Assembly (NCBI GenBank): GCA_029953675.1
Contig: JAMWBK010000010.1
Span: 1,426,001-1,490,000, forward strand
DNA: 64,000 nucleotides
From: Rhodosorus marinus CCMP1338
Taxonomy: Eukaryota > Plantae > Rhodophyta
Direction of reading: 5' to 3'
The translations under genes and the position numbers were made by a program. The notes beneath the pieces were generated by a model. That model saw only the letters and a program-made list of their open reading frames with translations, did no database searches and was not told where the DNA came from. Position 1 is the first letter of the stretch; every line of letters begins with the position of its first letter. Shown here piece by piece: positions 2,915-64,000 of the stretch.

Positions 2915-5216
2915 ATGTCGATCGCATTTGATGAGGCGGGTAGGCCGTTTATTATCGTGCGTGAGCAGGATAAAAAGGAGCGGTTGAAGGGGATCGAGGC
3001 GGTTAAGGTGAGGAAACCAGGGGTTCTTCGTTGCGTTTTGTTTGCTCTAGTATATTTCGTTTGAGGGCTGAGCGTGTTCGTGTGTATTTGTGCACTGGCG
3101 ATCGTTAAGGCGAACATCGCCGCAGCGAAGGCAGTCTCTAGAACGTTGAGAAGTTCGCTTGGGCCAAAAGGCATGGACAAGATGCTGCAGAATCAAGACG
3201 GGGAGGTTACTGTTACAAATGATGGGGCTACTATTCTTCAACAAATGGATTTACAGCATCAGATAGCAAAGTTGATGGTGGAGTTATCAAAAGCGCAGGT
3301 ACAGAGCTCAGCGGTCCGAAGCACTGCTCTCACCGCCATATAGAGTGAGTCTTTCTGCATCATATCTGCGGATGGTTCTAACCACCGGTTTTTCTGCTCC
3401 GCGGTTGTGAAGGATGACGAGATTGGCGATGGTACGACGGGGGTAGTTGTTCTCTGCGGCGCTCTACTCGAACGAGCAGAACGGCTCATTGACCAAGGAA
3501 TTCACCCCAGTAGAGTTTCTGAAGGATACGAAACTGCTTGCGACTTAAGTACGGAGCTATTGGCGAGAATTTCCGACGAGATAACTCTGAACGATACCAA
3601 GTTGACGGAGATGAAGAAAGTAGCTATGACAACGTTAAACTCCAAGATCGTCAACCGTTTCAAGGACAAACTTGCGGACATATGCGTCAGCGCTGTGACA
3701 TCGGTTGCAGACTTTGAGCGGAAGGACGTCAACTTGGATTTGATTAAAGTAGAAGGGAAGGTTGGAGGCAAGCTGGAGGACACGGTGAGAATCGCTTTGC
3801 GAATTTCTCAAACGATCAAAGAGCAATAAGAGCTGGAACTGACGAGATTTGTGTCCGGCGAATATGCGTTTTAACCAGAATCTAGTCAATGGAATTCTCG
3901 CAATCGACAAGGACTTCTCTCATCCTCAAATGCCGAGGCGCGTGGAAGACGCCAAAATCTGTATCCTTACCTGTCCTTTTGAGCCCCCAAAGCCCAAAAC
4001 GAAGCACAAGCTGGAGATCGATTCAGTGGAAAAGTATAAGGACATGCAGAAAGCGGAAATGGAGTACTTTCAGGACATGGTTAAGAAGGTTAAGGACTCG
4101 GGTAAGGCCTGAAGATTACCTTTAGAAAAGCTTTTATTGCTGCAGCGGAGCTGAAGCGAATGCCACTTCATCCTTTCAGGTGCTAACCTGGTGATTTGTC
4201 AATGGGGATTCGATGATGAGGCCAACCATCTCCTTTACAAGGCGGGGCTCCCTGCTGTTCGATGGGTTGGCGGAGTTGAGATTGAATTGATCGCGCTTGC
4301 GACAGGTGGGCGAATTATTCCTAGATTTTCAGAGATTTCACCGGAAAAGTTGGGCCGTGCTGGTGTTGTAAAGGAAGTGCACTTTGGGACTACTCGAGAT
4401 AGGATGATCGTCCTCGGTAAGTTGAATCGGCTTCGGTGCTTGCCGTGCAAACGTTTTTTGAGACCTCACAGCGCTCTCTTAATGCGACGTTGTTTTAGAG
4501 GATTGCGCAAAGTCCAAAGCCGTGACAATTTTCGTGCGTGGTGGAAACCAGATGATTCTAGAGGAAGCAAAGCGCAGCATCCATGATGCTTTGTGTATAG
4601 TCAGGAACCTCGTTGTGGTATGTGGCCAACAAGGCATCCTTTGCTAGAGGAGTACTTACTTGATATGCGTTCATTGCAAGCCATTGTTGCGGTCCGCCTT
4701 GTGGAAACGTGCTGATGCTGTACTTCTAACCGTGATCCATCAACAAAAACAGGATAATCGAATTGTTTACGGAGGCGGTGCTGCAGAAATCGCCTGCTCA
4801 AATTACGTTGCCGAAAAGATGAACGAAATTCCGGGTGTAGAACAGCACGCTGTTGGTGCGTTCAGCGAGGCTTTGGACAGTGTCGTGATGGCGCTAGCGG
4901 AGAACTCGGGACTCAACCCAATCGAAAGCTTGGGTGAAATCAAAGCCCGTCAGGTACAGTTCGGTCGCTCTTCAACAGGAAGAATAGATTGTTGGCTCTG
5001 GATTTTCTAACAGATATCGCGTTCCTCACCCTCCAGGCAAATGAAAAGAACGCACATCTTGGAATTGACTGTATGGGCCTTGGCGAAAGTGACATGAAAA
5101 AGCAGAGCGTTTTCGAATCGCTGCAGAGCAAGCAGAAGCAACTTCAACATGCCACCCAAATGTGCCGAATGATTCTAAAAATCGATGATGTCATTCAGCC
5201 CTCCCGGTATGAATAG
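2915..5216 (+). CDS. CCT5: T-complex protein 1 subunit epsilon (chaperonin CCT5), 8 exons
   Basis: [14 protein letters not shown] start, [61 protein letters not shown] and [10 protein letters not shown]. Introns 3007-3109, 3299-3412, 3785-3878, 4102-4179, 4416-4498, 4618-4752, 4954-5036. Confidence 0.97.
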
Positions 5217-11498: not shown

Positions 11499-13863
11499 AT
11501 GACGGATTGGGATGAAGGGAGTGTCTACTACTCCTATCAGAGTCTGGAAACACCGGGTAGTTCCGGAGCAGGTCTTGATGATGGTGAGATCACGGGAGCA
11601 AAGGCAAGAATGCGTTTTGGAAAGTTCCTGCTGGATTTTTCGGAGAGGAATAGGTACCTCTACAGGGAAAGAATGCTGAATGGGATCAACGCCGGTGAGC
11701 CTAGCTTGTCGGTATCCCTGGACCACCTTCAAGAGTACGATGAACAGCTTGCGTCCTGTGTTAGAAAGAACCCGGGTTTCTACGCTCCGATTCTCGAGCT
11801 TGCTGCGGGAGAGATTTCAGTGAGGCTTAGGAATGACACGGATGCAGACGAGCTCGTGGCTTCACACGGCGACGAGAATGAAACTGCGAGCGAAATCCGC
11901 AGAAGATCAAATGTGCAAGTTGTTTTGACCTCGACGGAAATGCCAAAATACATTCGAGAGCTCCAGGCATCAAACATATCTTCCTTTGTACGAGTGTCTG
12001 GTATCGTGACATCGGCCTCAAAGGTACAATGCAAAGCCGTGGCAATTCGCTTGGAGTGCAAGAATTGCAGATCTCGAATAACCTTGCGCGTTCCGCCCGG
12101 TATTGGCGGTGTCGTGATTCCGAGAAGCTGTCAGCGCTTGCACGCTGAAGGTGAAGCTCCGTGTCCAATTGACCCATACGTCGTACTCCCAGATGATGGA
12201 GAGTTTCGCGATCAGCAGATTATTAAGCTTCAAGAACTTCCGGAAGAAGTTCCTACTGGAGAAGTGCCACGGACCGTCATGGCTTCCCTGGATCGTGCGC
12301 TTTCCGGTCGGCTCTCTCCTGGTATGAGGGTTTCACTCTTTGGTATCTACAGTATTTTCAGTCCCCGAGAGCGGAGCAGAGCTCAAAACGTCGGCGGTCC
12401 TGGGACCGGAGCTACTCGGACGCCTTACTTGCACGTCCTTGGAATGCTTCAGAACAGCGATGCTGGGGCAGGTGGCCGCTCAGAGTTGACCACTTTCGAC
12501 CTTGAAGAGGAAGAGCAGATGCAGAGACTCGTCAGGACTCCCAATCTGTATGAGCTGATTGTTTCTTCGATTGCACCAGAGATTTATGGATTCGATGATG
12601 TGAAGAGGGCGGTGGCCGTGATGCTCTTCGGAGGATCCAGGAAACACCTTCCGGACGGGACTCGCATTAGAGGTGACATTAACGTTCTCCTACTTGGAGA
12701 CCCTTCGACTGCGAAATCCCAGCTCCTCAAGTTTGTTGAGAAGGTCGCACCGATCTCGGTCTATACGTCGGGTAAGGGCTCATCCGCGGCGGGCCTTACG
12801 GCATCCGTTATTCGTGACGGTGGTAGTTCAGGAGACTTTCGACTGGAAGGCGGGGCGATGGTACTCGCGGATGGTGGGGTTGTATGTATCGATGAGTTCG
12901 ACAAGATGCGTATCCAGGACTCTGTAGCAATTCACGAGGCTATGGAACAACAGACAATCTCCATTGCGAAGGCGGGAATCACTTCTGTTTTGAATGCTCG
13001 AACTTCGGTCCTCGCCGCAGCCAATCCAGTTTTCGGGAGGTTCGACGACACCCGCTCTGCTGATGAGAATATCGACTTCCAGACTACAATTCTTTCCCGC
13101 TTTGATCTCATCTTCATGGTTCGAGACACCCGAAATGAGGAAATGGACTACGCGAAAGCTCAGTTCGTCCTGCAGTTGCACCAGAGAGGGGGAGCTGCTA
13201 GAGCGAATTCTGGTGAAGGTGGTGATGAATCGCACCTGAGCCTGGAGACCCTGAAGCGCTTCATCGCTTACGCTAGGTCAAGGTGTGCACCTCGACTGAC
13301 CCATCAGGCTGCAGGGATCTTACGGGATACCTACGTGCGTATGCGTCAGCAAGTTCGACAGAATGACGAGGATTCGGTTGTCCCAATTACAGTTCGTCAG
13401 CTTGAGTCACTCGTGAGGTTGACAGAAGGGCTTGCGAAGATGTCGCTCTCCGCGCTCATCACTGAGGCCCACGTCAATGAAGCTATTCGCCTGTTCAAGG
13501 TGAGTCACGAAACCAATCAGCATGGGATGCACTCGCAGCTCTTGTACATGCATGGACTGAAGGTGTCCTCTGTTTTTCTTTCTCATCTTTCGCTAGTCCG
13601 CAACCATGGAGTCGGTCGCCGCTGGCGCTGTGAACTTGGATGGACGGCTGTCCGATGCTTTGAAATTGGAAGTAGAACGAGCGCAGGAGGTCATGCAGAG
13701 ACGGCTGCCCATTGGTTCATCAACAAGCAAGAGAAAAGTGATTTTTGAGCTAAAGAATCAGGGAATCTCCGACCAGTCCGCACGTCTCGCAATTGAGTTC
13801 ATGAACAAGCGTGGCGATGTCGAGTTGAGGAGTCAGCGCAAGCTCATTCATCGCGTGAGATGA
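11499..13863 (+). CDS. MCM5: DNA replication licensing factor MCM5, 2 exons (intron 13500-13596)
   Basis: Zn motif CKNC..CPIDPY, Walker A GDPSTAKSQ, Walker B IDEFDKM, arginine finger SRFD, ITVRQLESLVR, and a C-terminal winged helix. Confidence 0.98.
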
Positions 13864-19029: not shown

Positions 19030-20435
19030 TTAGGTTTTAAATTTTCTCGTCAATTCGGAATCCCGAGTGAACCATTCGTCCACCTTATCCAAGCCTTTCA
19101 CTCCAAGATCGACGACGTTCACTGATCGTTGCCAAGCCCCAGTCTCGTCCTGCTTGAGACATATCATGATGCTAAGGTCCTTTGCTACGGCAGCTATCAT
19201 ATACTCTGCGATGAAGCCTAAGAGGGTCTGGTCATCGAGCTCGCTCAGACCCTCCTTGGCTTTTGTGAATGATTCGTTGCTGCTCTGCTCATTGGCTTGC
19301 GCTGATGTCTCGTATGCGACGAGCTCCCACGGAAGGCTCTACAAATACATTCAGGGATATCAGAGTATGCCTACTGTCACCCACAAGCCAGTTTCTTTTT
19401 GCGTAACACTCACAGTCATGGCTTCGGGATTCATGTACATGTTCCACAGCTTTTCTTCAATTGCTCCTCTGTCTGAATTGAAACGTCGTAGGAGCTCATC
19501 GAGAATGAGCTTTGCGCCATAGGAATCTACGTATTCCTTCGTTTGAATATTTTGAATCTGATCGAGCGTACGAAAGCATACTAGTCCTGTTAACCGTGAG
19601 TCTGGCATTGGGCAGGCTTCTTGAGGTATTTCCTTACGTTGTCTGAGAGTTCCTTGTTCATCTCCATGGCTAGGATGCCTTCTTCTAGCAGGATAGCAGA
19701 AGGAATTTGAGCTTCGATATCGGCGCGCGAGGAAAACGCTTTTCCGTCCTTAAACACTTTGAGCCATTTGTGACCGTTCTCCCAAAGTTCACGAACTGCT
19801 CGTGCTATTCGAACTCTGTCACCGCTGAGAAGATCGGCTGGGTTGTAGGCCCCGACTGCGCCTCTATCGAAAAGCATTCTGAAATCGCAGAAAGAGCCAT
19901 GTGTAAGATATAGAAGCACTTGCTCAACGATTGTCGAACTGAAGAGTTTCTTCGAGAGAGGGTCAGAGGCTTACTCGAAGAATGCTGTTCTATACTTTTC
20001 AGACAATTCGGGTGGTAGCAGCCGTGAACGAGCGGTGAGATAGTACTTTGGCTTCAGCTCGAGGCACCAGGATCCCGCGCCAAAGCTAGCGGAGAAGTTT
20101 TTCTTCAGTAAGACCGATGGGCGCTCCTTGTCAATCGCATGGGCGACCTTCCCATGCTTCCGGACGGGTTCAACTCTTTTCTCGAGCGCCTCCAAAAACT
20201 CACGAGTACACGGCACTGGTGTTCCAGGGTCGGCATACTTGCCGCCGACAAGAGGCATCATGACACTGCGTATGAATTGCTCCTCGCTGTCTCCAGCCTC
20301 CGCGGAATCTTCAAGAGCAATTCTGAGCACCTTCCCCGTAAGCACCGAACTTTCCGGTCCATGATACGCAGCAATCAAGTGAGCGCTGCCTTCCGCAATG
20401 TATTCATAGTCTTCTGCACGGAGAACGACTGTCAT
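19030..20435 (-). CDS. IPK1: Inositol-pentakisphosphate 2-kinase, multi-exon
   Basis: YIAEGSAHLI..Y, KVLRI, CLELKPK, YNPADLLSGD, YMIAAVAKDLSIMI and VVDLGVKG. Stop at 19030. Confidence 0.87.
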
Positions 20436-20560
20436 CTTGACCTTATCCACTTCTGCCAACTACACTCGCAGAGCTCTCTCCGTTTTCAATTGCCCGAAAC
20501 CAATCCGGTCTCCTCAGCGTTTGCTGTTGTCTTCTCGGACGGAAACAAAAACGTTTCATG

Positions 20561-25449: not shown

Positions 25450-27003
25450 CTATACTTTCAGATGTCGAGCCTTCGGTTCCTGGACGAGTCCAACTGGTAC
25501 CAGCCACAGTAAAGAGTTTTTGCCCAAGATGTGCCTAAAGTTATTAATTATCCCGCGGTTGTAAGAAACGAAGTCCTGGCGAAGACCCAACCAGCCAGTG
25601 TGAGACATGTGTATCGACAGACCTGAGGAATGAACTACCTGTATGAAACAAGTGAAGGGCGGGTACATACCTTGCGTGCCGTTTCTTTCATGGATTCCAC
25701 TTGCGTCTTATTGAGCGCTGCGAGATAGAGGGTGTAGCTCATCAAGCCAAAAACTCCAACAAACGTAATGAAAGCAATCATCGACGAAAACGGTAGACTG
25801 ACGCTGAGAGCAACAATGGCATTACTGTGAAGCTGTTGACAGACAAGCAGAGCTTTCGTGTCAGTCGAGAAAGGGTGTATATATCCAATGCAACTATGTT
25901 CAATCGCTCTTGGGATTACCTTTGGTCCATGATGCATATGCGTAAAGAATCGGATGAAAATGAACGTGTAATACCCCGTTGACAACTCCACATATATTAA
26001 GAACAGGAGAAAAAACTTCATGTTCTTGTGCCCAACGCAGTTGCCTAGCCATGGGCAATGGTGGTCCATGCGAAGCACACACCTGGACAATGAGGTAGTT
26101 TTAGTGCTCTTTGTGTTCGCCACATGAAAGAGTTTGGGCTCACGGGCACGAGACAGTGCGAGCTACTCACCTATGGCAATAACTGCAATGATACACACGT
26201 GGGGGTTTGATGTCGTTACATCTTGTGCACCTCGGAACTTCCTCACTCGGTTGACTCTCTGAAATCATGGCCTGAAGAACGCTCTGGTTTTCAACGTCAT
26301 CTCCTTCATCCTCTCCCACCTCCGTATCCTCTGGATACTGCAAATCCGGTCTCATGCGCCTCTACGAAACATGTTCCACAAATCAAGAAGAGCCTCTCAG
26401 CTCCAGAGAGGTGCGCCCCGACACACAATCTGAAGTCTATTGCCTTACCCAGTCCCTCGCTCCTCCTGGGTCTGTCATGTGACCCCTGATATAACTTATG
26501 AGCGTCATCATTATGAAGAAACAGAACTGAAGACTATATTCTAAATTCGATTTTCTCACTGATCGAACCTCCGGTGAAACAGAAGACCAGCTCCCTTCTC
26601 CAATTGCGACGACTTTCCAGATTGGGCAACACAATCAAAAGAACGTGATTCTTCTCAGAAATTCGTACAAGTTTGCTCGAGAATGCCTCATGTAGTTCGT
26701 ACCTGTGACATTCCTTATCCTCACAGGCCACTTTTTTGGCTGATATGAAACCTTCCCATCTGGTCCTCTCACAGGGAGATGCTGAACTGGACGGCCTGTA
26801 CGAATTTCTACAGTTTTCGTTGGATGAGCAAGAGGATCCATGTACAACATGACGTTTGCCATCACCGCCGGAAACAGAATCAAGAACAACACAAATGCCA
26901 CATAACAAGCAGCCTCCTTCCGCAGCTCCGCCGCTGCTGTAGGAGCCGTCGTACAACACCAACAAACTCCGCACTCATCCTCGTCGAAGCATTCACAACA
27001 CAT
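25450..27003 (-). CDS. DHHC-type protein S-palmitoyltransferase, multi-exon
   Basis: MTDPG, CTRCNDIKPPRVYHCSYC, CVLRMDHHCPWLGNCVGHKNMKFF, NKTQVE and YNRG..NN...ILG, with flanking hydrophobic segments. Confidence 0.93.
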
Positions 27004-28168: not shown

Positions 28169-31100
28169 TCAAATCGGGCCTTCGTATCCCGGGGGGGGGT
28201 AATGGTTGTGAACTCCCTCTCTGTGCGCTTGAGCCTGAGCAAGGTTGAAACGCGGCAAAACAAAATTAGTAAAACAAATTCGGGACACTGGCTTGGGCTT
28301 GGCATAGATCCTTGCGCGCGCACCGATAATTCTTCTGTTTGCGGGATAAGCTCTGGTTTTTGCGACTAGATTTGACCTGGAGGTGTGTCGGCTATTGCCC
28401 GGTAAAAGTCGTGCTGCATCCGAAAGCTTTTGAGCGCTGTCCCTAGCAGGCCCTGGCCGATTTACTGCCGGAGCGTTTTCTAGTCGACTCATCCGCCCCG
28501 TTGCATTATGTTGGTCAAGGTGCATCCCTACAGCTGGCTTCACTGAACGACGAACTTTTGCTGGAAATTCCACCGTCCCAGCTTGTGGAAAAGCGCGGAG
28601 TAGTCGCGGATCGTCTCGACCTGGTCCTTGCACTACCGGAGAGTTGTGTGGAACATTTCCCCGAACTTCGGAATGCAGGCTGCTAACTTGCCCACGAATC
28701 TCTCCATGCGATGATGGATAAAGCTCTCCTTCGAGCTTTCTCTTCTTGGGTTTTGCAGAACCTACGGGAAAGTGTGTATTATGCGTGGTTGACCCTGCCT
28801 TGGTCACTGCCTGACCGTTGGGCGAGCGGTTCATTCGCAAACTCGGACCGGCTCGGCTCAAAGTCGTGCGAACACCAGCATGGGCTGAATGACCGCTTGC
28901 TAGGTTTTCGCCTTGTTGGCGACGCTTGGGGGGTGGACCTTGACCATCTTGGACAAGCGGACTTCTCTGCCCTACGGCTCCGTCCACCTCCAAACTCAGA
29001 TCATTCCTCGCAAAACTTGGCGCACGAGTGATATCCTCGGCCATGGGAGCCTTTTGCGTTTGCCGAGCCTGCCCTCCTCGCTCGTCAGCAAACGTCTTCG
29101 AAAGGAAAAAGCCCGAGGCATCTGGACTTTTTCCCGCCGGGATCGAATGTTGGTCCTCTCGGCGGACAGTATCGAGCTGCTTCAACCTCTCCGAGGCCGT
29201 GTCACTTTCGCTCTCCAACTCTGCTCTGTATGCTTGACTGGGATTTCCTTCAAGGCTGGAACTAGGGTTGGCTTCCAAAGTCTCGCTAGCTCCCTTGCTC
29301 TCAGCCTGCCCCCCTCGTTTCGTCCTAGTAGAGTCTCGAGGATTTCTCGAGACTCCGGCTAGTCGGGAATCCTTCGCGTGGTTGGCTTCCGAATCTCGCG
29401 TGCGAAGTACACCTCCCCCATCTTCTGTATTCTTCTCGTCACGGTTTTGAACTGGCCGCTGGTCCTCACTGTGGCGGTTACCGTGCCCCTTGGTTGCATG
29501 CACCGATCCTACATCAGACTTATCATGTGGGTTCTCCAACCTGCCTATGAGTGGTTGGCCGCCTTTCCGCTCGTTTCTAGTTCCCTGGTTCTCGTCCAGA
29601 GTCTTGTTGTAAGCTCCAGACCTGGCGTATCCGGCTCGTTGGTTTCCAGCAGTGTTCTGTGAGTTGACAACGGCTTCGGGTCTCGACTGAGAATCCTTGC
29701 GGTGTTTCCCGGGTAGCTGCAATCGATGCTCACCGGGTTCGATGTTCACAGCACCTCGAACATCTGCTCCTTCCGGGGAAATCTTCCGTAGGGCAGCGGG
29801 CTCATCTGGACACGAGTTGAAAATAGAAGCAGTTGAGATCCCCTTCTCCACAGCATACCTCGGCAGAGGCTGGAAATTATCTCTGGCACGGAAGCTGAGC
29901 AAAGTATCAACGGACCTTTCCCTGACAAATTGGGCAGGGGGGCTGCTGCTTCGTGGTAAGAATTGGTCCTTTGTTCACTTTTCCATCTACCCCTGGCGTC
30001 CACTTGTGAAAGCAGTGAGTTTTCTTCACAGAACTGAATCATCCGCGACCAAGAAGGCGAGCTGCGTTGTAACAGCTTCGCGTCCCCAATCGTGATGAGG
30101 GAATACTTTGCCCTAAAAGATGAAGCGCAGGTCGTTAATCCCTAGGTTTAGGAAACGCACCCGAGACCTGTAGAATGACGGTCGAAGCCGCGAAACTCTT
30201 ACCGCGTAATAGCTACGTTCATTCTTCGCAAATCCTTGAGAAAACCGATGGAGCTAGTGTCATTGATTGAGCCACTTCGCACAGTGGATAGCAGCACAAT
30301 ATCTTTTTCTCGCCCCTGAATCCCGTCGATTGTGTTCACCTCAATCTTCATCGTTGAGAGCAATCGGTCACGACCTATAGTTTGATGAAGTTCCCGCACT
30401 TGAACCTTGTATGGTGAAAGTATGGCTATCTTGTCGGTGAAGTCTTCGTCACGAAACTTTGTGATCAAGTCTTTCAGAATTGAAACGCAAAGCGATTGCT
30501 CAAATCTGTTCTTCACAGATCCATTGTAACTCCTCTCCTCTTTCCCACAACCCGACGTATCCACAAAGGTTAAAGGCCCGAAACGATTGTTACATTTCGT
30601 ATGAAATACTTTGGTGTATTCCTACTGGTTCAGCACGCGAAGATATTTTCACACACTGTCAATGCTTTGCCTGATCTCCATACGCTAGCGCACAAAAAGA
30701 GTTGCCTGCTGTGTCGCACCTTTTGCCGAACATTCTCAGCGTCCATTAGCTTGCCTGCGTAAAACTCCTGCGAAGGAAACTTACTGATGAGCGGATGCAT
30801 CCTGTACTGCACCGCGAGCATGAGCTCGGAAGAACCCTTCTTCAAGGCACCATCGTTGAGGCGCTCAAAAAGGCTCTTCGAAAACACCTTGCGCACGGCC
30901 GGCACGTTCGAAAATACAGTAGCTGGGAGTTGGCGAGGGTCTCCGACCATGATACAATGGGGGGGCTTTCTTGGGCCCACTAAAGTTAGCGGAATAAGAA
31001 CCTCGGGTTCAACAGCTTGTGCAGCCTCGTCCAGAACCACACAATCAAAAACGCCACTTGACCTGCGCAGGAAGTCATGACCTGCGGAATTCAGGGTTGT

Positions 31101-34100
31101 AAACACAAGGGTCGCCGACGAAACAATATTATCAATTGCATCCCGCACGTTGACAGCAGAACGTTCACGCTGGGATTGCAGCTGAGTGTTCTGTTCACGT
31201 AGCTCTTTCAGGACGGCGTTCTTTTCTGCATGGAGTCTCGTAAGCTCCCGTGTCAGTCTCTCGTCCTGAGCGAGGAACTTTTCGGTCACGTTAGCCTCCG
31301 TGATGCGCCAGGCGTCTCTCTCCGCACTGGACTCAACATCGACAACAACCTCTGAACTCTCCCGTTGCCCTTCGCCATTTACTTGCGGGCCTTGTTCGCT
31401 AGTGGATGACTGCTTCCTCGACTTCCTCCAGTCGTTCCGCTTCTTGTCTGCTTCTGAAATTTGTGACTGCATGTGATCCAGTTCGCTCCTGACTCTATCC
31501 CGCGACGCAGTCAAGTCCTTGTCCGGTCGGCTATCCATCCCGTCCTGCCTGGAAAGCAAAAACGAAACCGATACTTTTTTGACGTCCTCGGACGTTGAAC
31601 CTCCACCAACCCTTACTAGGCTGGGGACGTAGAATCCATTCTCGGCTTCTGGGTGGGTGAGTCCTTTGCGCATCACCCTAACCAAGATTTCGTCTACAGC
31701 AGCATTCGATGGAGCACATACAAGCACGCGCATTTTCTTCCGACGCTCAGAAAACATGTGGTTCGACCCACCAACACTGTCTGCTAGAAGCACTGAGAGC
31801 AGAGATAGAACAGTTGTCGTTTTCCCAGTCCCAGGCGGCCCGTGGAGCAGGGTAAATCCGTTGGACGATGAGTTGCAGACGGTAGAAATCACAGCGGTCT
31901 TGACGGCGTCCAGCTGGGACTCGTTCAAAACCCTACCCGTAGCCAGGCTTCTACACATCTGCTGCATTGATCGCGGGATGGAGAAAAACTTTGAATCGAT
32001 GTCGTGGACTCCAAGCCTCTCCCTCGGGCTGAGAATGTTAGATGTAATCCTCGACCTGGCTTCGGAGACGTGCCAGATTGCCTCGTACTGTCGTTGGTAC
32101 GTAGCGAGCCCCTGAATAATTGCGACCTCTACCTTCAAGCCCGGAAATACGATGAGACCTTCCTTCTTCATCTGAACCAGGAAGTTCGTGGCAGCCCCGC
32201 TTCTAAAGTTGCCTGTATGCAAGACTAGCGCCAAGCCCTCCCAAGTAGCCTGCTCTTTCTTAATCCTCAGCAGAACAAGATCCCCAACGGCCGGCATCTC
32301 AGCTTCCTGTCCGGAGAGCATTGACTTTGTCTCGCTCAAGCTCGACGCAGGAGTCAGAGAGAACAAAAGCGACCGATCTTTGGTTTCTGGAGGATCCACG
32401 ACGCTCATTCTGACAAACGGATCATCCGTGGGCGAAGCACTCGCGTTCTTTTTCTTCTGCAAAAGCTCCATGTAGGCTTTGCTCAGGCCCGCCCTGATCT
32501 CTCCCAGCAGAAGAGGTTCCCAAAACATGGAATATTCGGCTGCCTTCGGGAATCGCTCTGGATAGCTCTCTCTTCTCTTAACTTCTTTAGATGCCAAGCC
32601 CAGCTCTTCATTCTGCAGATCAGACACTGACCACTGTAAAATTTGTCTACGGAAATCATCCAACGTACGCGTCTTTTCCCTCTTCACCTTTTGCTCAGCA
32701 GCAATTGCTTGGGCGTCGGGTTTCACGTTGTTGTCAAAGGTTCGGCGGAAGGCGATTTTGCCTGCTTCGTAGGCATTGTTCTGGTTCTCCAAATAGCTCC
32801 CTTCCATTGCCATCTTGCTGCCACGGTTATCCCTTATCCTCTGTCGCATCTCGAGCTTCATGCGTTCTATCTTCGTTGGGGGTCGCCTAGGATCTGCTGC
32901 ACCAACTCCAGTCCCGCTTCTTCCAACGATGCTGACGTGCATAGATGCAGCGCTCGGTGCCACTCCCGCTTTCGGTCCAACCCTCTCCGCGGTCTGCGGA
33001 AGCACTCTCTGCACGGCGTAGATTTTCTCTATCAAAGCAAACTGCTGAACGCTGATTCCATCGCCAAGCTCCATCACGAGATTCTGCGCTTCAGAGAAGC
33101 ATTCAGAATCTCCTGCGCCGTGAGTTTCATATAGTTCCGCCACTGTATTAGTCCATTCTCGTTGAACGGTTGGTAAACGGCCCCATCGAAGCAGGAGCTT
33201 GAACAAGATCGCGTGGAGTTCCTCGTTTTTCACAGGATCGAAAAGCGCCAGCTCCCACATCCTTCGCAGACCAAAAATTACCTTCGGTGCCACAAGTTGG
33301 AAACTGGAGAGCTCTTTTTGCTCCACCAATTCCTCCAAGATGCGCTCAATGCACGAAAACATGTCCTCTGTTGCCAGTGATTCACGCATTGCTAGCATCC
33401 AATCAGCATCGTGCTGAGCCGTAGATGAAATAAGAGGTATCCAATGGCAAATTGCTCGAATCATCAAGTGCGAATTACTGGTCGGAAGCAAGTTTGACTT
33501 TCGAATTGCCGACCCAACACTTCCCAAGAATGCTTCCCTATTTTCATCCTCGAACAGCCATTTCAATACGTCCGTATGGTCCTCGTCATGGTCCTTCTTT
33601 CGAAAGAGTGTTTTCACTAGCAAAAAGCTTTTCTGGCGCAAAGTGTTGTGAGAACAGAACAACACAGCGCCTAGATGCGGCGCTAGCACTTTCCTCAACT
33701 GTGGTCCTAGTTCTCTCATACGCAAGGAAATAGGAAGGCTTTGGTCAACCTTTGTCATGTAGAGCGAAAGTGACTCCTGTATCGAATTCAATCGTCCACG
33801 GGCGCGAATTTCTTCCTCTGTCGAAGTCACCAGATCTTTCGCATTCAGGAAGTGGACGCATTCCATGACTAAGAGGAATAATCTCATTTCGTCCACCAAA
33901 CTACGTCCGCTGAGACTTCCACGGTGGTGCAAGTTCGCAATGGAATCCCACAAGAAGCTATCCGATAAAAGCCTCCGCTCGGCACTTTCATCTGCACTCC
34001 GAAATGTTGGATCATCATCTCCAAGAAGGTATTCGCTACTAAGACCACTGCTCGTAATAAAAACATATTTTCGGGTTTTTAGCACCGGTGGATACCACCG

Positions 34101-42598: not shown

Positions 42599-43447
42599 TC
42601 AAGATATAGTGCAGCAAGCGTCAGATCTATGACCCCTGCGTAAGCCCGCAAAGCGCAGTCGACCTCGGGGGAATGACCCGAAAGAGAAAGAGGACAACTC
42701 TGGCGAGTTGTTCACATTGTCCCAAAAAATGTGGGCTTGAGAAGTACAGCCACATTTTGCGTTCTCCTTGCCGCACTTGTAGCAGAATTTGGCTCCACAT
42801 CGGCACATGACCTTGTCGCAGCCATCCTTCCTCTCTATACCGTTCCCACAGTTTGAGCAGATGCGCATGCCCAAGGATACAAGCAGCTGCGCCACTGCCT
42901 GGTCTTCTTCACCCTGAGCCTCAACCATGACCAATTCGTCGCAGGATTTGCAGAACACTTCACACTTCTCCTTCGACGAGCTTCTCAAGACCTGGCTGCA
43001 TGTCTTGTTTGGACAAAGCTGCAAGCACGAGTCGTTTCCAAACTTTGAGCTCACACGAAACCTGCTAACTCGGGCAATCGTCTCTGGACCAACCAGTGCT
43101 TTCAGATCTTGAATCCCAACACGCTTTCGGCATGTTGGCTCCGGGCAGACAGGATCTGACTGGTAGCAGTCATAAGTCCGAAACAAGGATGTTGAACAAA
43201 AGCCATGACCACAGTGAAGATAATACATTGCTTCCTTGGAGTGTACCTCCAAGCATATGTCACACCACATATCGTTCAAAGTCAGTTGTCGCGCCTAACC
43301 TCCATCACCAGATCAAATTCTGAACCCAGACCGGAACGTGCATAAAGAAGACGCCCTTCCTCTACAGAACCTCGCATCCTCACGGGATCCGCTTCACGCG
43401 CTCACGACCTCCTTCGCCTCCACCACATTTCCCTGCCCGCAAAACAT
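42599..43447 (-). CDS. Small RBR (RING1-IBR-RING2) E3 ubiquitin ligase
   Basis: RING1 CDIC...CGHGFC...CPEPTC, IBR-like CPNKTC...FCKSC, RING2 CSNCGNGIERKDGCDKVMCRCGAKFCYKC. The short first exon (ATG 43447) is tentative. Confidence 0.85.
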
Positions 43448-55731: not shown

Positions 55732-56373
55732 AATGGGACTGGAGCGATAGACTTAATCACAAGGCTCACTGGCCTTTTTCCATGAGAGTTGCTCGTACAC
55801 TACATCAACAGCAAACAAACTATTCCAAGGCAATACCGTTCAATCCACCTCTAGCCTGGCGGCAGTTCCGGCAAATAAGTCTACGCAGGTGTCACATTGC
55901 GAACATCACCAGAGCTGTAGATTTCGTACAATGAAATCCAGGCCGTTTCAAAAATTATCAATTTTCTTACATAATTTTTTTGACAACGACGCGTTATTTC
56001 CTCGTTGCAAAATTTCGCGGATTTCTCCTGACTAAAAATGGGTATTTTGAGGTGATTTGTGGATTTCCATTGGAAACGGGCGTTTTTGAAGGGTTTCGAT
56101 GTGCCGGGATGGTAACAGGGAGGGTGGGATGAGAACCGTATGATGATGAATAGATCCTGACATCATATAGTGATTCGTTTGGTTTGGATTATATATTGGC
56201 TCGTTTGTGAGGCCTCTCTGGGTGGATGTAAGGGGTACTCGTGGTGGCAAGAACATAGAGATGTCAAATTTAGGCACATACTGGACTCCACCGAATGAGT
56301 TTCTGAAGAGTCAGGTACGTAAGGGTTGTTCTGATTGGGTTTTATGTAGATTTTGAAATTGGCGCTTGAGAGC

Positions 56374-59300
56374 ATGAGATCAAGGATGGTATTTGGTTGT
56401 TAGTGATCTTTGCTCATTCGCATCTGCTTTCTTCCCTCCTTTGCTTCCGGTGGATGTCTGTAGTACGCTACGCGATTGAGGAAGCCTCTACCCTCTCCAG
56501 AGGATCTGAAAGCGAAATTGAGGAAACATCTGGATGAGGAAGCGAACATTGTGACTCGATTTTTGAAGGCGAACAACATCAAGAATACGCTCAAGCTGTT
56601 GTCCATATATCCACCAGATCGATCGCTGCTTCCAGATTATTTCAACTTGCTCAGTACGTGCAAAGATCGCTCGAACCGGATTTGGCTCTGATTAAGTCGC
56701 CTTAGAAGTGGAAGCTTACCCCGCCCCCCGTCGTATCTTTCAGAGAGCGAGGATCGATCAATATGTCGGCTTGCCCATCATTTGGTACGGGAATGTACCC
56801 CCCTAGCCGACGATGAGTACAAGCAACTTGTTCAGATACTTGATTCTGAAGTGAATCAAAAGTCTTCTGTTCGTCGAGCCGTAGCCCTGAGGACGCTCGC
56901 GAGGGTCATCAAGAAAAGAGTATGTTTTCGTTTGGAACGAATATCATGATCTCGCTGCAAATCTTCCGACCTTGTGTCCAGTGTCCATTGGCAGCCGCTG
57001 ACTAGAGAGCTCCGTATACCACCTGCTGCCTCGTCAGGATACGAAGAGAGGACTGAATTCCGCTGAAATCGCTCTGCGAAGTATAGCTGGAGTCACGAAA
57101 CAGATCAGAATCTCTAAGGGACTCCCGGTGAAACCTTCTTCAGGAAAGAAGAAGAAGAAGAAAGGTGAGTGATAGTTTACACCACATAACTGGCGATGGT
57201 GGCTCGCAAGAAGTACGGGCTTTGTGTCCGATTGCCCGTAAAACATGTTACGCAGAGCAGAGGACAAACCACTCGCAGTTCGGTTGGCTCTTAGAGCAAA
57301 GAAACCAGTGGTTTTTTGGGCAAACGTCGCTCCAATTTCGTTCTATGCGGTATATCAGAACTGACGTTATTTGCTTCCAAAACACTTTTCTACATCAGGA
57401 GACGACAACGAAGAACCGTACGAGGATTCTGACGAGGAGGAGAAGATCGACGATGGAGCGGGAAATCTTGTTTACGCGAGGGATATCGCGACCAAAATCA
57501 AGGACAAGACCGGGAAAGTCATTATGGGGCATACTGTCATGGCATGTGTGAGGAGATGTAACAAGGTCAACCCACAAAACTTTGGAATTGAAGTGAGTTA
57601 CCTTGAACACCCACCCGCGCTAGTCCATTACAAAAAGTTCGGTGTGCGAGCGTTCGACATGTCTGAGTTGGACAGGGGCTGAAAAAGTCACTCTATTCTT
57701 TTTTGGGCATCGTGATTTCGTCCTGCTTCGTTCTTGTTTAGGTCTATTTCTACGACCTCGGGTTAAGAGCCAATACGCCATCGACTGTCCGCAACACGAT
57801 AGGACTACTTGAAAACAGACTCACAGCAAATATCAATGCTGTCGGTTTCTATTTGCATCCCAGACTGCCACAATTCAATCCACCGGCTGAGAAGAAACTA
57901 GTTTTCGAAGACCTCGGGGCCAAGGTGCGATTGCTAGATACATGCACGCGATCTTACGCTTCCCAATTGAACTCAGGATTTCGTACTTCTTCGCACCGAA
58001 TCGTGGCTATTCTCGACAGATTTACTACGCTCGAATACTGGCAACTCTGGCTACTGATCCTAATCTTGAGGCTTACGTTGAACGGAACGCGACTCCGGCT
58101 TCCCAAGCAAAGGCGAGGAAGGGATTGTTCGGGTTCATGTTCGGAGGTGATGGGAAGGCAAGTTCAAATGCTCCTGGGGGAGTAGCAGCAAGTCCTGTTC
58201 TACATCTAGACGCGCTTTTGGGGGGGTTTTCCTCAGGGCCCGGTCACGCAAAGAATTCATTGCAGCTTGCGGTTTATGGAGCATTACATTAGCGTGCGGT
58301 CTGATCATTTTCTCCTGTTGACGTGCGGATTCTACTTCTTATACATCTCTTTTACTCAGTCAAAGAAGAGGAAAGGAAACGCTCTACGAAACGACAAACT
58401 CGGTGTTGACTTTTTCGAAGCCCTAACCATCCTCCTTCGCAACCCTAGCGGGCGAGTTCTCCTAGAAGTGATTGTTGGCTTGTCGAGGAGGAGCTGGGCT
58501 TCGTGGATTGACGTACCAGTTCCATCTCATGCCCTTTATGATGCGCCAGACTATGACGACGCGAGGGTCAGTATTTTTGTTACGACAAAACAGGTTGATG
58601 AAGGATCGATTGCGAGCTCATCGTATGCTTCTTGCTCGTTTCGTGTTTGAGAGGGCAGCTTGCGGGTGATGTTGATATTGACTATGATGATGACAGTGAT
58701 GAAGAGTTCCTGCAAGACGACAAGTTCGCCAACAGCAATAATCAGGTAAACATACGTTCTTCACTTTTGTTCCGACAGCCCAAGGATGAATGGTTCTGAC
58801 CAGCCCTTCCGTGTTCCCCGTGGGTTTTGTATTTTGCCGCATTGTTTTCTGATCAATGTTTAGCAAGAGCTTCAGAGCGCTTTTGGCCAAGCACAAGGCC
58901 CTCAAGGTCCAAGCTACATGGCCAAGAAGGAAAAACGGAAACTAGCACGAGAGCAACAAGCACAACTGAATGCGCCCTTTTACTTGCGAAAACTTGGAGA
59001 GGGAATGATTCCCGCTCTTGAGGTAGTAGAGATGGCATAGAATGATCAACATTTGTGGCCCAGGTTGGTTCGATGTCGCTCACTCGCTGTTGGAACTTGC
59101 TACGCTTTGCGAACAGGTTGTTATGCGCCGTATTTTGGGAGGAATGGTAAAAGACGATGCTTGCCTACGCTTCGGTGCTCTTCGTGCTGCTGTCGCGATA
59201 GCTAGAGCCAAGCTTTACACCGACACTCCAGAGGTATGCTGCTTGATGGGATGAGCGAATTAGATCAGAAACCGTATTGTTTGTAGGACCTCCTATATTC

Positions 59301-61914
59301 ATATATACGTCATCCGAAAAGTGGCTAATCCTTTCTTCCTGAACTCCCGATGCTACACGCGAAAAGGAGCAAGATCTTCTGACAAAGGCCAGGTCGGAAT
59401 ATTATGGAACCAGCGCAATGCCGCCAACGCAGCAGCAGCCGGGTGCACCGCAACAAGGGGTCCCGCAGCAAATGACGAGGCCCCAGGGGCTCCTACCCGA
59501 TCAAGGAATGCCAACCTTTGAAGATGACAATCAACAGCACATACTCGAGCCACTTACAAAGCACTTACTGTACCTATTGGCGGAGGAGCCATCGCTTTAC
59601 GTTCGTTGTAAATCAGCGGAAGCCTTTCTCCTCTTCATTGCTGCTGGAGCCGGATCGTCGGTATGTTGACCAACGCAAGCAGCTTACAATCCTGAATTTG
59701 AAAAAGTCAGAGTCTCTAAACGCTACAAGTGCCTCCTATCGTCTGATTAGATTGAGGACAAGCTCGAGGAAGACGAGGACGGTGCTGTTGAACCCCAATC
59801 TGCAGGGTTTCGGGACCGTAGTATTCGACCAGGGACGTCGTTTGAAGAGGACAGGAGGAACCAAAGAGGTCCGCCACTCAATGAACAAGGCGAACTGAGA
59901 AGTATGGTTGACAACGGGGGCATCCCAAACGATGTACAAAGTGGCCCACCGGGAGGCCCACCGGGAGGCCCACTGGAAGGCCCACCGGAAGGCCGTGGGG
60001 GTCCGCCTAGAGGTCCACTTCCTATGGGACTACCTCGGACACGACCTGAAGACGCGAAACCGCCGCCTCCACCACCGCTACCCCCTCTGATAAGGTTCTT
60101 CAGACCCTTCCTATGCAATGAAGGGATGAAAGGACATATCGCTCTCGACGCGTTGCAACCGTTTCTCGAGTCGCTGATCTTCGAGGTGCGATAAACAGCA
60201 CAAGCGTTTCAAAATTTGCGCGGAGACGATCAAGTGAATTTCTACTTGCTGACAGGCCCTTCTGCTTTCCCTTGCTGTTGTGATCACCTTTCCACTTGAT
60301 GTTCTCAGGTTCCGGACGTGGCGCCGTGGCTTGCAATCCAAGTAGTAGAACTTTTGGAGGATTGCGCGTTCTATCATGGTACTAAAGGTTGGTGTGGGTA
60401 CCTTCTTGAAGCGTGGGAAAATGTACTGGCAATTGGTAAGCGCTAAAGCCGTGCTGGATGCACCGCTCGACACGGTCTCGTTGTGTAATCCTTCGCAGTT
60501 CATAGGCTAATTGAGTTCTTGTTCACCTCGTTCAGCTACGATTCCGTGTGCCCACGCCGTCGCGGACTCTGTGCGTAGATGCGCTGAAGCCCTGTACGTT
60601 CATATCCATTTGCTCTATTCTCGTGGCTTTAGGGAGTGCTCCTCGTCATACCTCTTTGCTCATGCGTTGGTCTTTATATTTGCTCCCGAGCAGGCCTGAC
60701 CGAGAGCGACTGTCCGCGACAGCTGCGCAGTTCCTGCGAAGGCGTGTCCTTGATCTGACGGTTTTGTCGGTGGGGGCGGGTGAACTTATGGTAAAAGGTG
60801 TTCCGACGCCATTGCCGCAGGTAGTGGGCTCCGAGATGGAATCACATTTCTCTCTGATTTACCACGGAATTTTGATGGGACCGTCCCCAGAAAGCCGGTA
60901 GGTGTTGGAACATGAGCTTCTGATGTCTCCATTCGCCGTCATTTTCGAGAGGGAGAGCTTAAGATGGGCTTGTTCCGCGTTTTATCGACCGCCATAGGCA
61001 ATGCTTTGTAGACGCCCTCGGTGGAGCTGCCGTTTTGGCCGGTGACCCTTTCCGTATTAATGCATATGAGAAACTATGTGAGTTGAGGCTTGCTCGAGGA
61101 CTCGGACTGCGTGCCGCGGTCGACTTCGTTCTCTGCGCCCTCGACACATTGTATTCCACTCGCGAAAGGCTCGCAGAGGCCAGACTTAAGCTTCGCGAAC
61201 AAGGTATGTTTGCCTGGACTGGTCACGATACGAGGTGAACGGTTCTGTTCAGCAGTTAACCTCACTCCTCTTCTCTCAGGCGGAATTACGAACAGAAGCC
61301 GAGAGGAGGTATGGCTACAAGGAGTATGGAAACTTGCTGCTGAAGCCAGCGCTGCGGCTGGAAGCCTACTAGCAACTCCCCCTCCTCCAGGTATGTTCTC
61401 AGAGCTGTTGACCGCATCGCGGTCAGCGCCGAATTGTTTTTTCGCGAAAACGACGCTTATTTGAGAATCCTGTGCATCGCAAATTCGTGCTTTCCAGGAT
61501 GGCAACCGTTGGGAGCTGATGCCGCCAACGACGTAAGAGCTGCTGAAGAGCTGCTGGGAGACTTCCGGAAGTTTAAGATATCAGGTGAAGACCTGGAAGC
61601 GAAGCTGGTATGAGCCATCGTCTGAAACCTAACTGCGACGGGTCATTGATGCAGCCAGGTTTGAGAGGTGTGGTTTTATTTAATTGCTTTTGTTCTGCTT
61701 ATGTCATGTCCAGGAGGATCATGGACTAATGCCACCTGAGCAACGTGACATAGAGAATGGAAACCCTGCGCATGACCCCAGGGTGGATCCTAGGAGCGAT
61801 CGGAGGATGGACCAACGTGGAGACCTCAGAAACGATCAACGGGGTGGTCCAAGGGCGCTGCCACAGGACGGAGGGGGTGGAAACGGACCACCTCCGCCAC
61901 CGGGCCGGCGATAA
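56374..61914 (+). CDS. TSET/TPLATE complex large subunit TSAUCER (plant TASH3 homologue), many exons
   Basis: Motifs match recalled Arabidopsis TASH3 in order: KLLSIYPPDRSLLP/KLAVYNSVDPSLAP, SEDRSICRL/CEDRNVLRY, RKGLFG..GGD...LQLAVYGAL/KKGVFG.KGGD...LQYAAMSAL, LRNPSGRV/LLDPSERV, PALEVVMRRI/PLIKLVMRRL, LYVRCK/VYVRAM, PDVA/PDMA, AGDPFRINAYEKL/SGEPFRLQIYEFL, GLG...LDTLY/GLG...LDEMY, QPLG/LPLG. Start codon approximate. Confidence 0.85.
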
Positions 61915-62336: not shown

Positions 62337-62714
62337 TCATGGGGAAATCAGCGCTTCGATTCGCATCTTGTTAAGGGAGCGAGTCTGAATCTGAGGGCTT
62401 GCCTCATCGCAGCTTGCTGATTGTCCCTCTGCGTCGTGCGAGTGGGACAGGGCGTGGCTCTTCAGACTCGACCTCCATCGAAACTGTTTCTTGCAACCCG
62501 GACACGCAAAGGGAGTTGCCCCGGTGTGTATTCTCATGTGCACGCTCAAGTTCCACCTCTTACGGAACGCTCTATCACAGCCTTTCTGAGGGCAAAGGTA
62601 GATCTTTCCCTTGTCCTCCTTCAATTTTACCGGTTCCATCCCCTTCAAATCGTTCAAATCGCTCAAATCGCGTATATCCCTCACAACAACTTCAACGGGC
62701 TCTTCTATTCCCAT
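62337..62714 (-). CDS. Small C2H2 zinc-finger transcription factor with two fingers
   Basis: YLCPQKGCDRAFRKRWNLSVHMRIH-TGATPF-ACPGCKKQFRWRSSLKSHALSH; ATG at 62714. Confidence 0.88.
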   Translation of the reverse strand: MGIEEPVEVVVRDIRDLSDLNDLKGMEPVKLKEDKGKIYLCPQKGCDRAFRKRWNLSVHMRIHTGATPFACPGCKKQFRWRSSLKSHALSHSHDAEGQSASCDEASPQIQTRSLNKMRIEALISP

Positions 62715-64000
62715 GTCGCATGTCACCAACCGAGAAACGAGTCTAACACTTAGTAGCTAAATTGACTCTCTCGCATCAGAAAATGATTCAATTCTGCCCT
62801 CTCACCCTCAACTCGCACTCGCAGCAGATCATCAAGCTACGCTTGAGCTTTAAATAGTCCTTTCACACCTTTTTCGCTGGCAGGCACATCCCAGGTGTAG
62901 TAGACACTGATAGTAGTCCACCCAACTCCTGAACGCCTACATGACGAACTACCCGCCGACCACAACATCAATAGTCGCCTATATATATTTTGTACAAAAC
63001 AACATTCTAACATCAGGCAGGCCATCCTAACCTTTCCACAAAACGAATTGCCCGACACCTTAGCCAGCAGCCAGCCAGAAGCCAGCCGGCCCGATTCCAA
63101 TCACATAACAAAACACAAAAAAAAGTCCCCGGGGTAGGAATTTCCAAATTACACTGTACATTATTCCTCATAAATAAAACTACCCCTCCAATACCAGCCA
63201 TAAAAAAACCTTAAACAAACATATTTATTAGTTTAAAATCTATCTACCTCTTTTACATTTTTTTTTGTTACCCCTGATCAATAATATATTTGAAACCCTG
63301 GATTCGGAATGATCATCCATCTCCTACCCCTAAAATCTATATCAAACTAATTTTCCCAGAGTTTGGGTATCCACCTGTAGAAGCCGAAGATACTCAGCTT
63401 CAATGGTCCGCGGTAAATTATTTTTTTTTAGAGCTGTATGGCTTCTGACTACGTTGCCTGATTAAAAAATACTGCACAATGACACAAGGGCTATCACAAA
63501 CCCCCTCTGCTCTCGTGGAGCTTTTTTTTACTAGGGTGGGTCTCTGGGGGGGGGGAGTCGGGGGAAAAAGCTTGCTGCTGCGCCTTTAGCCAGCATAGGA
63601 AAAATAAATGGGTCTTGCAGAAATTTTGATGCCGAGGAGGATAGTAGGGGTGGGAACGGTGAGCAAAGTTTTGTCAATAGTAAAAATCAATCTAACAATA
63701 TGGGTGTGAACTTGAAATAAATTTAAAAATACATGAAGTCAGTACAACGAGAATCAAATATGTTCTATGAAAAAAGGATAAGTTTGCGAGTTGGATTGAA
63801 ACTGGTGGCAGCGAGAAACAAAAACGGAAAGGGGGGGGGGGGGTGGGCAAACGCTCTGCATGAAGAACAAATTTTATTTTCTTTTTTTTCTGTGAGGAAC
63901 TGAGTTGTACGTTTACTGGTAGTCAAAGCTTGAGTCAGCCATATGATGAAATTGTGTTTTTGTTGAAGAGGGGGATATTTGTGTTAATGGGATGCTTCTA

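Follow-up and report, generated by a model that had tools for sequence, protein, structure and literature searches.

Positions 56261 to 61914 of a 64,000-nucleotide (nt) stretch of DNA from Rhodosorus marinus, a unicellular red alga of the Stylonematophyceae, very probably hold the orthologue of TSAUCER (plant TASH3), the gamma/alpha-adaptin-like large subunit of the TSET/TPLATE complex; judged from comparisons of protein sequences and profiles, we put the probability at close to nine in ten. TSET, a "jotnarlog", is an ancient coat complex that animals and fungi lack. The gene lies on the plus strand and comprises 20 exons that run from an ATG at 56261 to a stop codon ending at 61914 and encode 1125 amino acids (aa). 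Its spliced translation is identical to P0005 (P-numbers are the protein labels of this analysis, and all positions are those of the whole stretch, hereafter the window), i.e., to GenBank KAJ8901973.1 (NDN08_004174, Rhodosorus marinus), which is annotated only as "hypothetical protein". The window gene is a new member of the TSAUCER family that is wrongly listed as hypothetical and that a dedicated survey did not pick up (see below).

The identity proposed in a preliminary description of this DNA is borne out by profile-profile comparisons and by reciprocal profile-sequence matches, with negative TPLATE and COPI-gamma controls. TSAUCER references (Arabidopsis TASH3, Physcomitrium, Heterostelium, Dictyostelium purpureum, Thecamonas and Naegleria) and the paralogous controls gamma-COP and TPLATE were taken from the supplement of Penot-Raquin et al. 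(2025; PMC12167817). Aligned by hhalign, the red-algal family to which the window protein belongs matches the TSAUCER references with a probability of 99.4% (E 2.8e-21) over 681 collinear columns, and a larger red-algal family supplemented with three bridging sequences does so at 99.8% (E 3.5e-30, ~670 collinear columns). By comparison, the red-algal family scores 0.6-1.3% against gamma-COP (COPI-gamma), 0.3% against TPLATE and 0.1% against the reversed TSAUCER alignment. Since E-values of 2e-21 to 3.5e-30 face a probability of 0.1% for the reversed template, the profile match lies far beyond chance. In the opposite direction, a TSAUCER profile from which red algae were left out detects P0005 at E 6e-22 (80 bits, Z = 1e5), as against ~1e-5 (26 bits, same Z) for gamma-COP and no match at all to TPLATE. 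Scores against such outgroups stand in for a tree in the phylogenetic placement of the family, which is highly divergent and offers few alignable columns.

The same picture emerges from a whole-library search, in which a profile made from a four-sequence alignment of the red-algal family was run against 1.84 billion representative proteins (E <= 1e-3). It returned 31 matches, about 20 of them close family members and the remainder mostly short fragments, and no adaptin, COPI subunit, karyopherin or other HEAT protein was among them. A reciprocal best match to another adaptin or HEAT protein, the outcome that the preliminary description had regarded as fatal to the assignment, therefore did not arise in this search. 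Three full-length distant matches (P0044, P0047 from Balamuthia, and P0048), which are the bridging sequences named above, are themselves TSAUCERs; P0048, for instance, scores 3.7e-38 with D. purpureum TSAUCER, 3.8e-23 with Arabidopsis TASH3 and 1.8e-13 with the Rhodella protein. Pfam assigns no family to P0005 at E <= 0.01 (no Adaptin_N, HEAT or SH3) and none to the draft protein at E <= 10, and searching the PDB sequences with the window protein alone found nothing. The family profile yields only sub-threshold matches to PDB sequences (E 0.03-0.18, ~15 bits), 14 of 15 of which correspond, in register, to the N-terminal trunk of the beta subunits of adaptor proteins (AP) 1 and 2, a weak similarity that fits a deep adaptin-superfamily relationship. 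The gamma, alpha, delta, epsilon and zeta AP subunits were compared through Pfam (negative) and the PDB sequence search rather than as separate profiles.

Residues 48-1035 of the window protein are collinear with residues 116-917 of Arabidopsis TASH3 in about 12 high-confidence hhalign blocks, in agreement with the earlier claim of about ten motifs that follow the plant protein in the right order. Aligned blocks (window protein/TASH3) include ICRLAHHLV/VLRYVYYYL, LLRNPSGRVLLEVI/LLLDPSERVCYEAI, PSLYVRCKSAEAF/CVYVRAMVIKAL, AGDPFRINAYEKL/SGEPFRLQIYEFL, GLGLRAAVDFVLCALDTLY/GTGLGVLITPMLKVLDEMY and WQPLG/YLPLG. The aligned part of TASH3 agrees with its trunk (residues 104-894), which is both required and enough to bind LOLITA/TSPOON and also contacts TPLATE (PMC7909872), and the window protein matches nothing beyond it. 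An AlphaFold2 model from a 19-sequence alignment (mean predicted local distance difference test [pLDDT] score 67; predicted template modelling score 0.61) shows a solenoid that is helical throughout; 642 residues reach pLDDT >= 70, and there is no beta-sandwich or platform domain and no appendage (ear). Predicted-disordered segments cover residues 158-213 (Lys/acidic), 324-364, 414-468 (acidic), 560-599 (Gln/Pro), 650-741 (Pro/Gly-rich, pLDDT < 50, encoded in part by a 12-nt repeat) and 1049-1125 (D-P/Q-R repeats and a proline run). With its tail disordered, P0005 has no SH3 domain by Pfam. Because the SH3 domain of TSAUCER is specific to Viridiplantae (PMC12167817, Figure S3), its absence excludes the plant-type TASH3 subtype, not TSAUCER. 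The name given beforehand is thus right as TSAUCER and wrong as TASH3 in the plant sense, the match being confined to the trunk. As for the AP and COPI adaptins, the window protein has neither their Pfam Adaptin_N trunk signature nor their C-terminal appendage.

The window (~47% G+C) has the appearance of eukaryotic nuclear DNA, and the exact agreement of the spliced translation with P0005 identifies it as nuclear DNA of R. marinus. Between 56.2 and 61.9 kb it contains no long open reading frame (ORF); stop-free plus-strand segments with protein-like translations succeed one another in changing frames. These segments, concatenated, served as the first query in a word-indexed search of a 5.8-billion-protein collection, which retrieved four relatives, none of them named. 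P0001 is an MMETSP transcript ORF ~90% identical to the window gene within exons, and its 90% cluster includes P0005, encoded on a 1.69-Mb contig, as well as P0006, the EukProt/MMETSP0011 protein of R. marinus; P0003 and P0004 are full-length proteins of ~1400 aa with 39% identity. Splice junctions were set by tblastn of P0001 and the distant homologues P0003 and P0004 against the window, combined with a reading of splice sites. The resulting exons measure 54-435 nt and are separated by 19 introns of 76-234 nt (mean 120), 18 of them GT-AG and one GC-AG (58158-58359; Table 1). P0006, which derives from a transcript, shares the start codon at 56261 (MSNLGTYWTPPNEF...) with the GenBank model. The preliminary description had correctly seen that an ORF track is blind to this gene, whose exons are so fragmented that no single ORF reveals it, and its 3' end at 61914 is indeed the stop codon; its 5' end at 56374 is off by 113 nt, the ATG chosen there lying inside intron 1 (56315-56463).

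Two kinds of candidate coding sequence within the gene were rejected. An 18-nt in-frame micro-exon at 56371-56388 (SMRSRM, with AG/GT flanks) would exactly close a six-residue gap relative to P0003 and P0004, and is found neither in the GenBank model nor in the transcript ORF P0006; this segment could be a micro-exon that is no longer used or is used alternatively. Minus-strand ORFs within the gene (60111-60503 and 61074-61505) are without support and were taken as chance ORFs.

Table 1. Exons of the TSAUCER gene, an associated repeat, and neighbouring genes in the window
Feature	Position	Strand	Remarks
Whole coding span	56261..61914	+	20 exons; translation identical to P0005
Exon 1 (aa 1-18)	56261..56314	+	ATG 56261; MSNLGTYWTPPNEFLKSQ matches the GTHWTRPNKYL motif of P0003/P0004 and the P0005/P0006 N-terminus; donor CAG/GTACGT (exon/intron)
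Exon 2 (aa 19-81)	56464..56653	+	Splice model
Exon 3 (aa 82-140)	56744..56919	+	ICRLAHHLV and VRRAVALRTLA motifs, aligned to TASH3
Exon 4 (aa 141-182)	57038..57164	+	Lysine run at end (AAG x5.7)
Exon 5 (aa 183-247)	57399..57592	+	Acidic disordered stretch, then solenoid helix
Exon 6 (aa 248-308)	57742..57924	+	Splice model
Exon 7 (aa 309-354)	58020..58157	+	Followed by the sole GC-AG intron
Exon 8 (aa 355-423)	58360..58566	+	LLRNPSGRVLLEVIVGLS motif, matching TASH3 LLLDPSERVCYEAILCIL
Exon 9 (aa 424-452)	58659..58745	+	Acidic disordered segment
Exon 10 (aa 453-505)	58864..59022	+	Red-alga-specific conserved motif NAPFYLRKLGEGMIPALE
Exon 11 (aa 506-544)	59117..59233	+	Splice model
Exon 12 (aa 545-642)	59367..59660	+	Gln/Pro-rich loop, then PSLYVRCKSAEAF helix pair
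Exon 13 (aa 643-787)	59751..60185	+	Largely disordered Pro/Gly-rich insert, not in TASH3; unaligned by hhalign
12-nt tandem repeat (GGCCCACCGGAA x4.3)	59943..59994	+	Encodes the (GPPG)n part of the exon 13 insert
Exon 14 (aa 788-829)	60309..60435	+	Splice model
Exon 15 (aa 830-848)	60536..60593	+	Splice model
Exon 16 (aa 849-916)	60694..60897	+	AAQFLRRR and GVPTPLPQ motifs
Exon 17 (aa 917-985)	60998..61203	+	AGDPFRINAYEKL and GLGLRAAVDFVLCALDTLY, matching TASH3 SGEPFRLQIYEFL and GTGLGVLITPMLKVLDEMY, respectively
Exon 18 (aa 986-1022)	61280..61390	+	Splice model
Exon 19 (aa 1023-1059)	61498..61607	+	WQPLG motif, matching TASH3 YLPLGP; trunk ends here
Exon 20 (aa 1060-1125 and stop)	61714..61914	+	Disordered tail with D-P/Q-R repeats and proline run; no SH3 domain
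CCT/TCP-1 chaperonin subunit	3407-3829	+	By Pfam
MCM helicase subunit	11499-13748	+	By Pfam
Inositol-pentakisphosphate 2-kinase	19971-20459	-	By Pfam
DHHC palmitoyltransferase	25635-26123	-	By Pfam
Sen1/Upf1-like AAA_11/AAA_12 helicase	30630-34085	-	By Pfam
RING-IBR E3 ligase	42599-43279	-	By Pfam
C2H2 zinc-finger gene	62337-62729	-	By Pfam; convergent with the TSAUCER 3' end

P0006 (MMETSP0011), a transcript ORF from a sister strain, is joined at the same exon boundaries as the window gene, and its presence implies that the gene is expressed in that strain. P0006 is 95.8% identical to the window protein in the confidently folded parts and 84.2% identical in the disordered parts, which argues for stronger constraint on the solenoid. 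The stretch occupied by the 12-nt repeat differs between the two, which suggests repeat-length variation between strains.

Published surveys present TSET as scarce in red algae. No subunit was found in the single red alga sampled by Hirst et al. (2014), according to the summary in a 2024 preprint, and Penot-Raquin et al. (2025), who screened 42 red-algal libraries including MMETSP0011, reported one red-algal TSAUCER, that of Rhodella maculata CCMP736 (CAMPEP_0191525766, Data S3). The family described here covers at least four classes (Stylonematophyceae, Porphyridiophyceae, Rhodellophyceae and Bangiophyceae). Its named members are in every case listed as hypothetical or uncharacterised and occur in Porphyridium purpureum (KAA8497557.1), Timspurckia oligopyrenoides, Porphyra umbilicalis (OSX68854.1, partial) and Purpureofilum apyrenoidigerum. 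Since so divergent a family spans at least four classes, the published scarcity of red-algal TSAUCER is at least in part a problem of detection and sensitivity, as the authors of the survey themselves suspected for stramenopile TSAUCER (PMC12167817). Outside red algae, three "hypothetical proteins" of Balamuthia mandrillaris (P0047, P0079 and P0080; KAL6048793.1, KAL6052466.1 and KAL6041065.1) form one 90% cluster, whose representative P0047 matches dictyostelid TSAUCERs at ~2e-29 and plant ones at ~1e-16 to 1e-17; this amoeba appears to carry several copies or alleles of a TSAUCER that is not annotated as such.

The second large subunit, TPLATE, can also be traced in red algae. In the first of five parts of the raw TPLATE_red file of PMC12167817, most sequences, the MMETSP0011 entry included, look by eye like beta-COP, and only a Rhodella entry (CAMPEP_0191513244) stood out there as likely TPLATE. 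Aligned together with P0011-P0017, this entry matches the TPLATE references by hhalign at 98.5% (E 3e-15) over 946 columns; the family also takes in P0051-P0076, and its named members, annotated as hypothetical or unnamed, are from Gracilariopsis chorda (BWQ96_05080), Gracilaria domingensis (FGB62_195g020) and Agarophyton chilense. On the strength of these matches, the Rhodella entry and its red-algal relatives are a genuine group of TPLATE orthologues; TPLATE thus occurs in red algae, and in Rhodella both large subunits are present. A divergent TPLATE-like protein, P0017, is encoded by an uninterrupted 963-codon ORF on a 10-kb contig (locus L001; JGI 3300016811, Ga0186080_100014) on which genes are tightly spaced on both strands and one carries an RRS1 domain. 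As for TSPOON, the one MMETSP0011 candidate checked in the raw output of PMC12167817 (CAMPEP_0113966274) was set aside, since it resembles by eye an AP-3-type sigma adaptin.

The R. marinus TSAUCER solenoid would pair with a TPLATE solenoid and cradle a longin-fold TSPOON, an assembly that would serve as the core of an adaptor-like coat in endocytosis or in another sorting step at the plasma membrane or in the endomembrane system. The protein has long disordered inserts and a tail instead of the plant SH3 domain, and their proline-rich runs (PPGGPPGG..., PPPPPPLPP, PPPPPG) could recruit partners in the manner of adaptor hinges. We think it somewhat more likely than not that the window TSAUCER works within such a core in R. 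marinus. It is about an even bet that, more broadly, red algae keep a divergent, working TSET core (TSAUCER and TPLATE, probably with TSPOON) that standard searches miss owing to its sequence divergence, that their TSAUCER has swapped the appendage/SH3 module for lineage-specific conserved segments and proline-rich disordered linkers, and that R. marinus is a second red alga with at least two core subunits.

Several observations weigh against these readings, some bearing on the identity of the protein and others on the complex. The family HMM (hidden Markov model) scores 14 bits against plant TASH3, and because this direct similarity is weak the TSAUCER assignment rests on profiles and intermediate sequences. 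Moreover, in a Foldseek comparison of the full-length model with the PDB, CAND1 and karyopherins come first by E-value, with TM-scores of ~0.2, and AP2 alpha (8t1o_A) is best only by target-normalised TM-score (0.53). These structural matches, the AP-beta flavour of the weak PDB sequence matches and the lack of any Pfam family could be read as signs of another adaptin-type or generic HEAT/ARM solenoid, be it AP-5 zeta, a paralogue of the AP gamma, alpha, delta or epsilon subunits or a karyopherin-like protein, whose likeness to TASH3 would come from solenoid repeats. Repeats of this kind would not readily produce a collinear match over ~670 columns at E 3.5e-30 while TPLATE and COPI-gamma, members of the same superfamily, score at chance along with the reversed template; with the 1.84-billion-protein search free of adaptins, COPI subunits and karyopherins, and with Adaptin_N negative in Pfam, we regard a different solenoid as very improbable. 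The Foldseek matches, generic solenoids at low TM-scores, do not discriminate.

With TSAUCER as the preferred identity, the observations on the complex concern its partners. TCUP was not recovered from any red alga by the published survey, whose authors saw TSET as a minor player there (PMC12167817); without a red-algal TCUP, a complete TSET hexamer is doubtful. A Rhodosorus TPLATE was not found in two protein searches seeded with red-algal TPLATE, which are insensitive and do not cover the whole genome (a Rhodella query gave unnamed matches, and an alignment query florideophyte matches only), nor in an equally insensitive scan of JGI contigs with back-translated TPLATE motifs, whose three loci include none from the R. 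marinus sample 3300016967. The searches for Rhodosorus TPLATE and TSPOON rely on shared words or exact motifs and say nothing about absence; within these limits, no R. marinus TSET subunit besides TSAUCER was shown, although the preliminary description had expected the others elsewhere in the genome. The protein might accordingly be a TSAUCER by descent that acts outside TSET, i.e., a surviving large subunit working alone or with new partners, as in the cases of animal TCUP/FCHo and the proposed haptophyte TSPOON, and the red-alga-specific conserved segments and inserts unseen in other TSAUCERs (e.g., WIDVPVPSHALYDAPDYDDA and NAPFYLRKLGEGMIPALE) would suit such a role. We consider this unlikely, given that true TPLATE orthologues occur in Rhodella and florideophytes, that Rhodella maculata has TPLATE alongside TSAUCER, and that the TSPOON-binding trunk is conserved over its entire length.

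That the genome and transcriptome of R. marinus carry a full-length, conserved TSAUCER corrects an annotation and a distribution and brings no new mechanism. The distribution of TSET serves the reconstruction of the membrane-trafficking system of the last eukaryotic common ancestor, and the red-algal sequences provide a taxon-specific profile with which red algae can be searched again. Similar divergence may conceal TSAUCER in other groups where it is undetected, e.g., diatoms and haptophytes.

By Pfam, the neighbours of the TSAUCER gene are ordinary housekeeping genes (Table 1), with no other trafficking-coat gene among them in the 64-kb window. Red algae are usually described as intron-poor; intron density in the window looks high and uneven, the TSAUCER gene having 19 short introns and the neighbouring MCM (749 codons) and Sen1-like helicase (1151 codons) genes being single ORFs. 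A 577-codon minus-strand ORF at 28169-29902 coincides with the highest-G+C stretch (0.54), where AT skew is strong (-0.21); its translation is of low complexity, basic and rich in Ser, Pro and Arg, and has no Pfam match.

Among the closest known counterparts, the TSAUCER of Rhodella maculata is collinear with the window protein over its full length (1612 bits with the family HMM), has all motif blocks in common with it, and likewise combines the lack of an SH3 domain with acidic and disordered inserts of the same kind. It differs in belonging to the Rhodellophyceae rather than the Stylonematophyceae and in its insert sequences, and its only known sequence is a transcript fragment without a start. 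With Arabidopsis TASH3 (AT2G07360, NP_001189515.1), the window protein shares the collinear alpha-solenoid trunk that constitutes the LOLITA/TSPOON-binding region, at ~20% identity between profiles over the 681 hhalign columns. However, it is without the C-terminal ~280 residues of the plant protein, SH3 domain included, and its predicted-disordered inserts, tail and short segments add ~380 residues without a counterpart in TASH3; of the two, only the plant protein has a demonstrated function.

The TSAUCERs of Dictyostelium and Heterostelium (Hirst et al. 2014; PMC4031984) resemble the window protein in consisting of a trunk without an SH3 domain, and they are the references that the red-algal HMM matches most directly (E ~1e-7, Z = 1e5). 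They are much shorter (729-873 aa) and without the red-algal inserts, and the amoebozoan complex has been characterised biochemically, whereas the red-algal one is known here from sequence. Finally, the large subunits of AP-1, AP-2 and COPI have the same superfamily fold, with an alpha-solenoid trunk, from which the window protein is set apart by the missing Adaptin_N match, the hhalign score with COPI-gamma and the lack of an ear.

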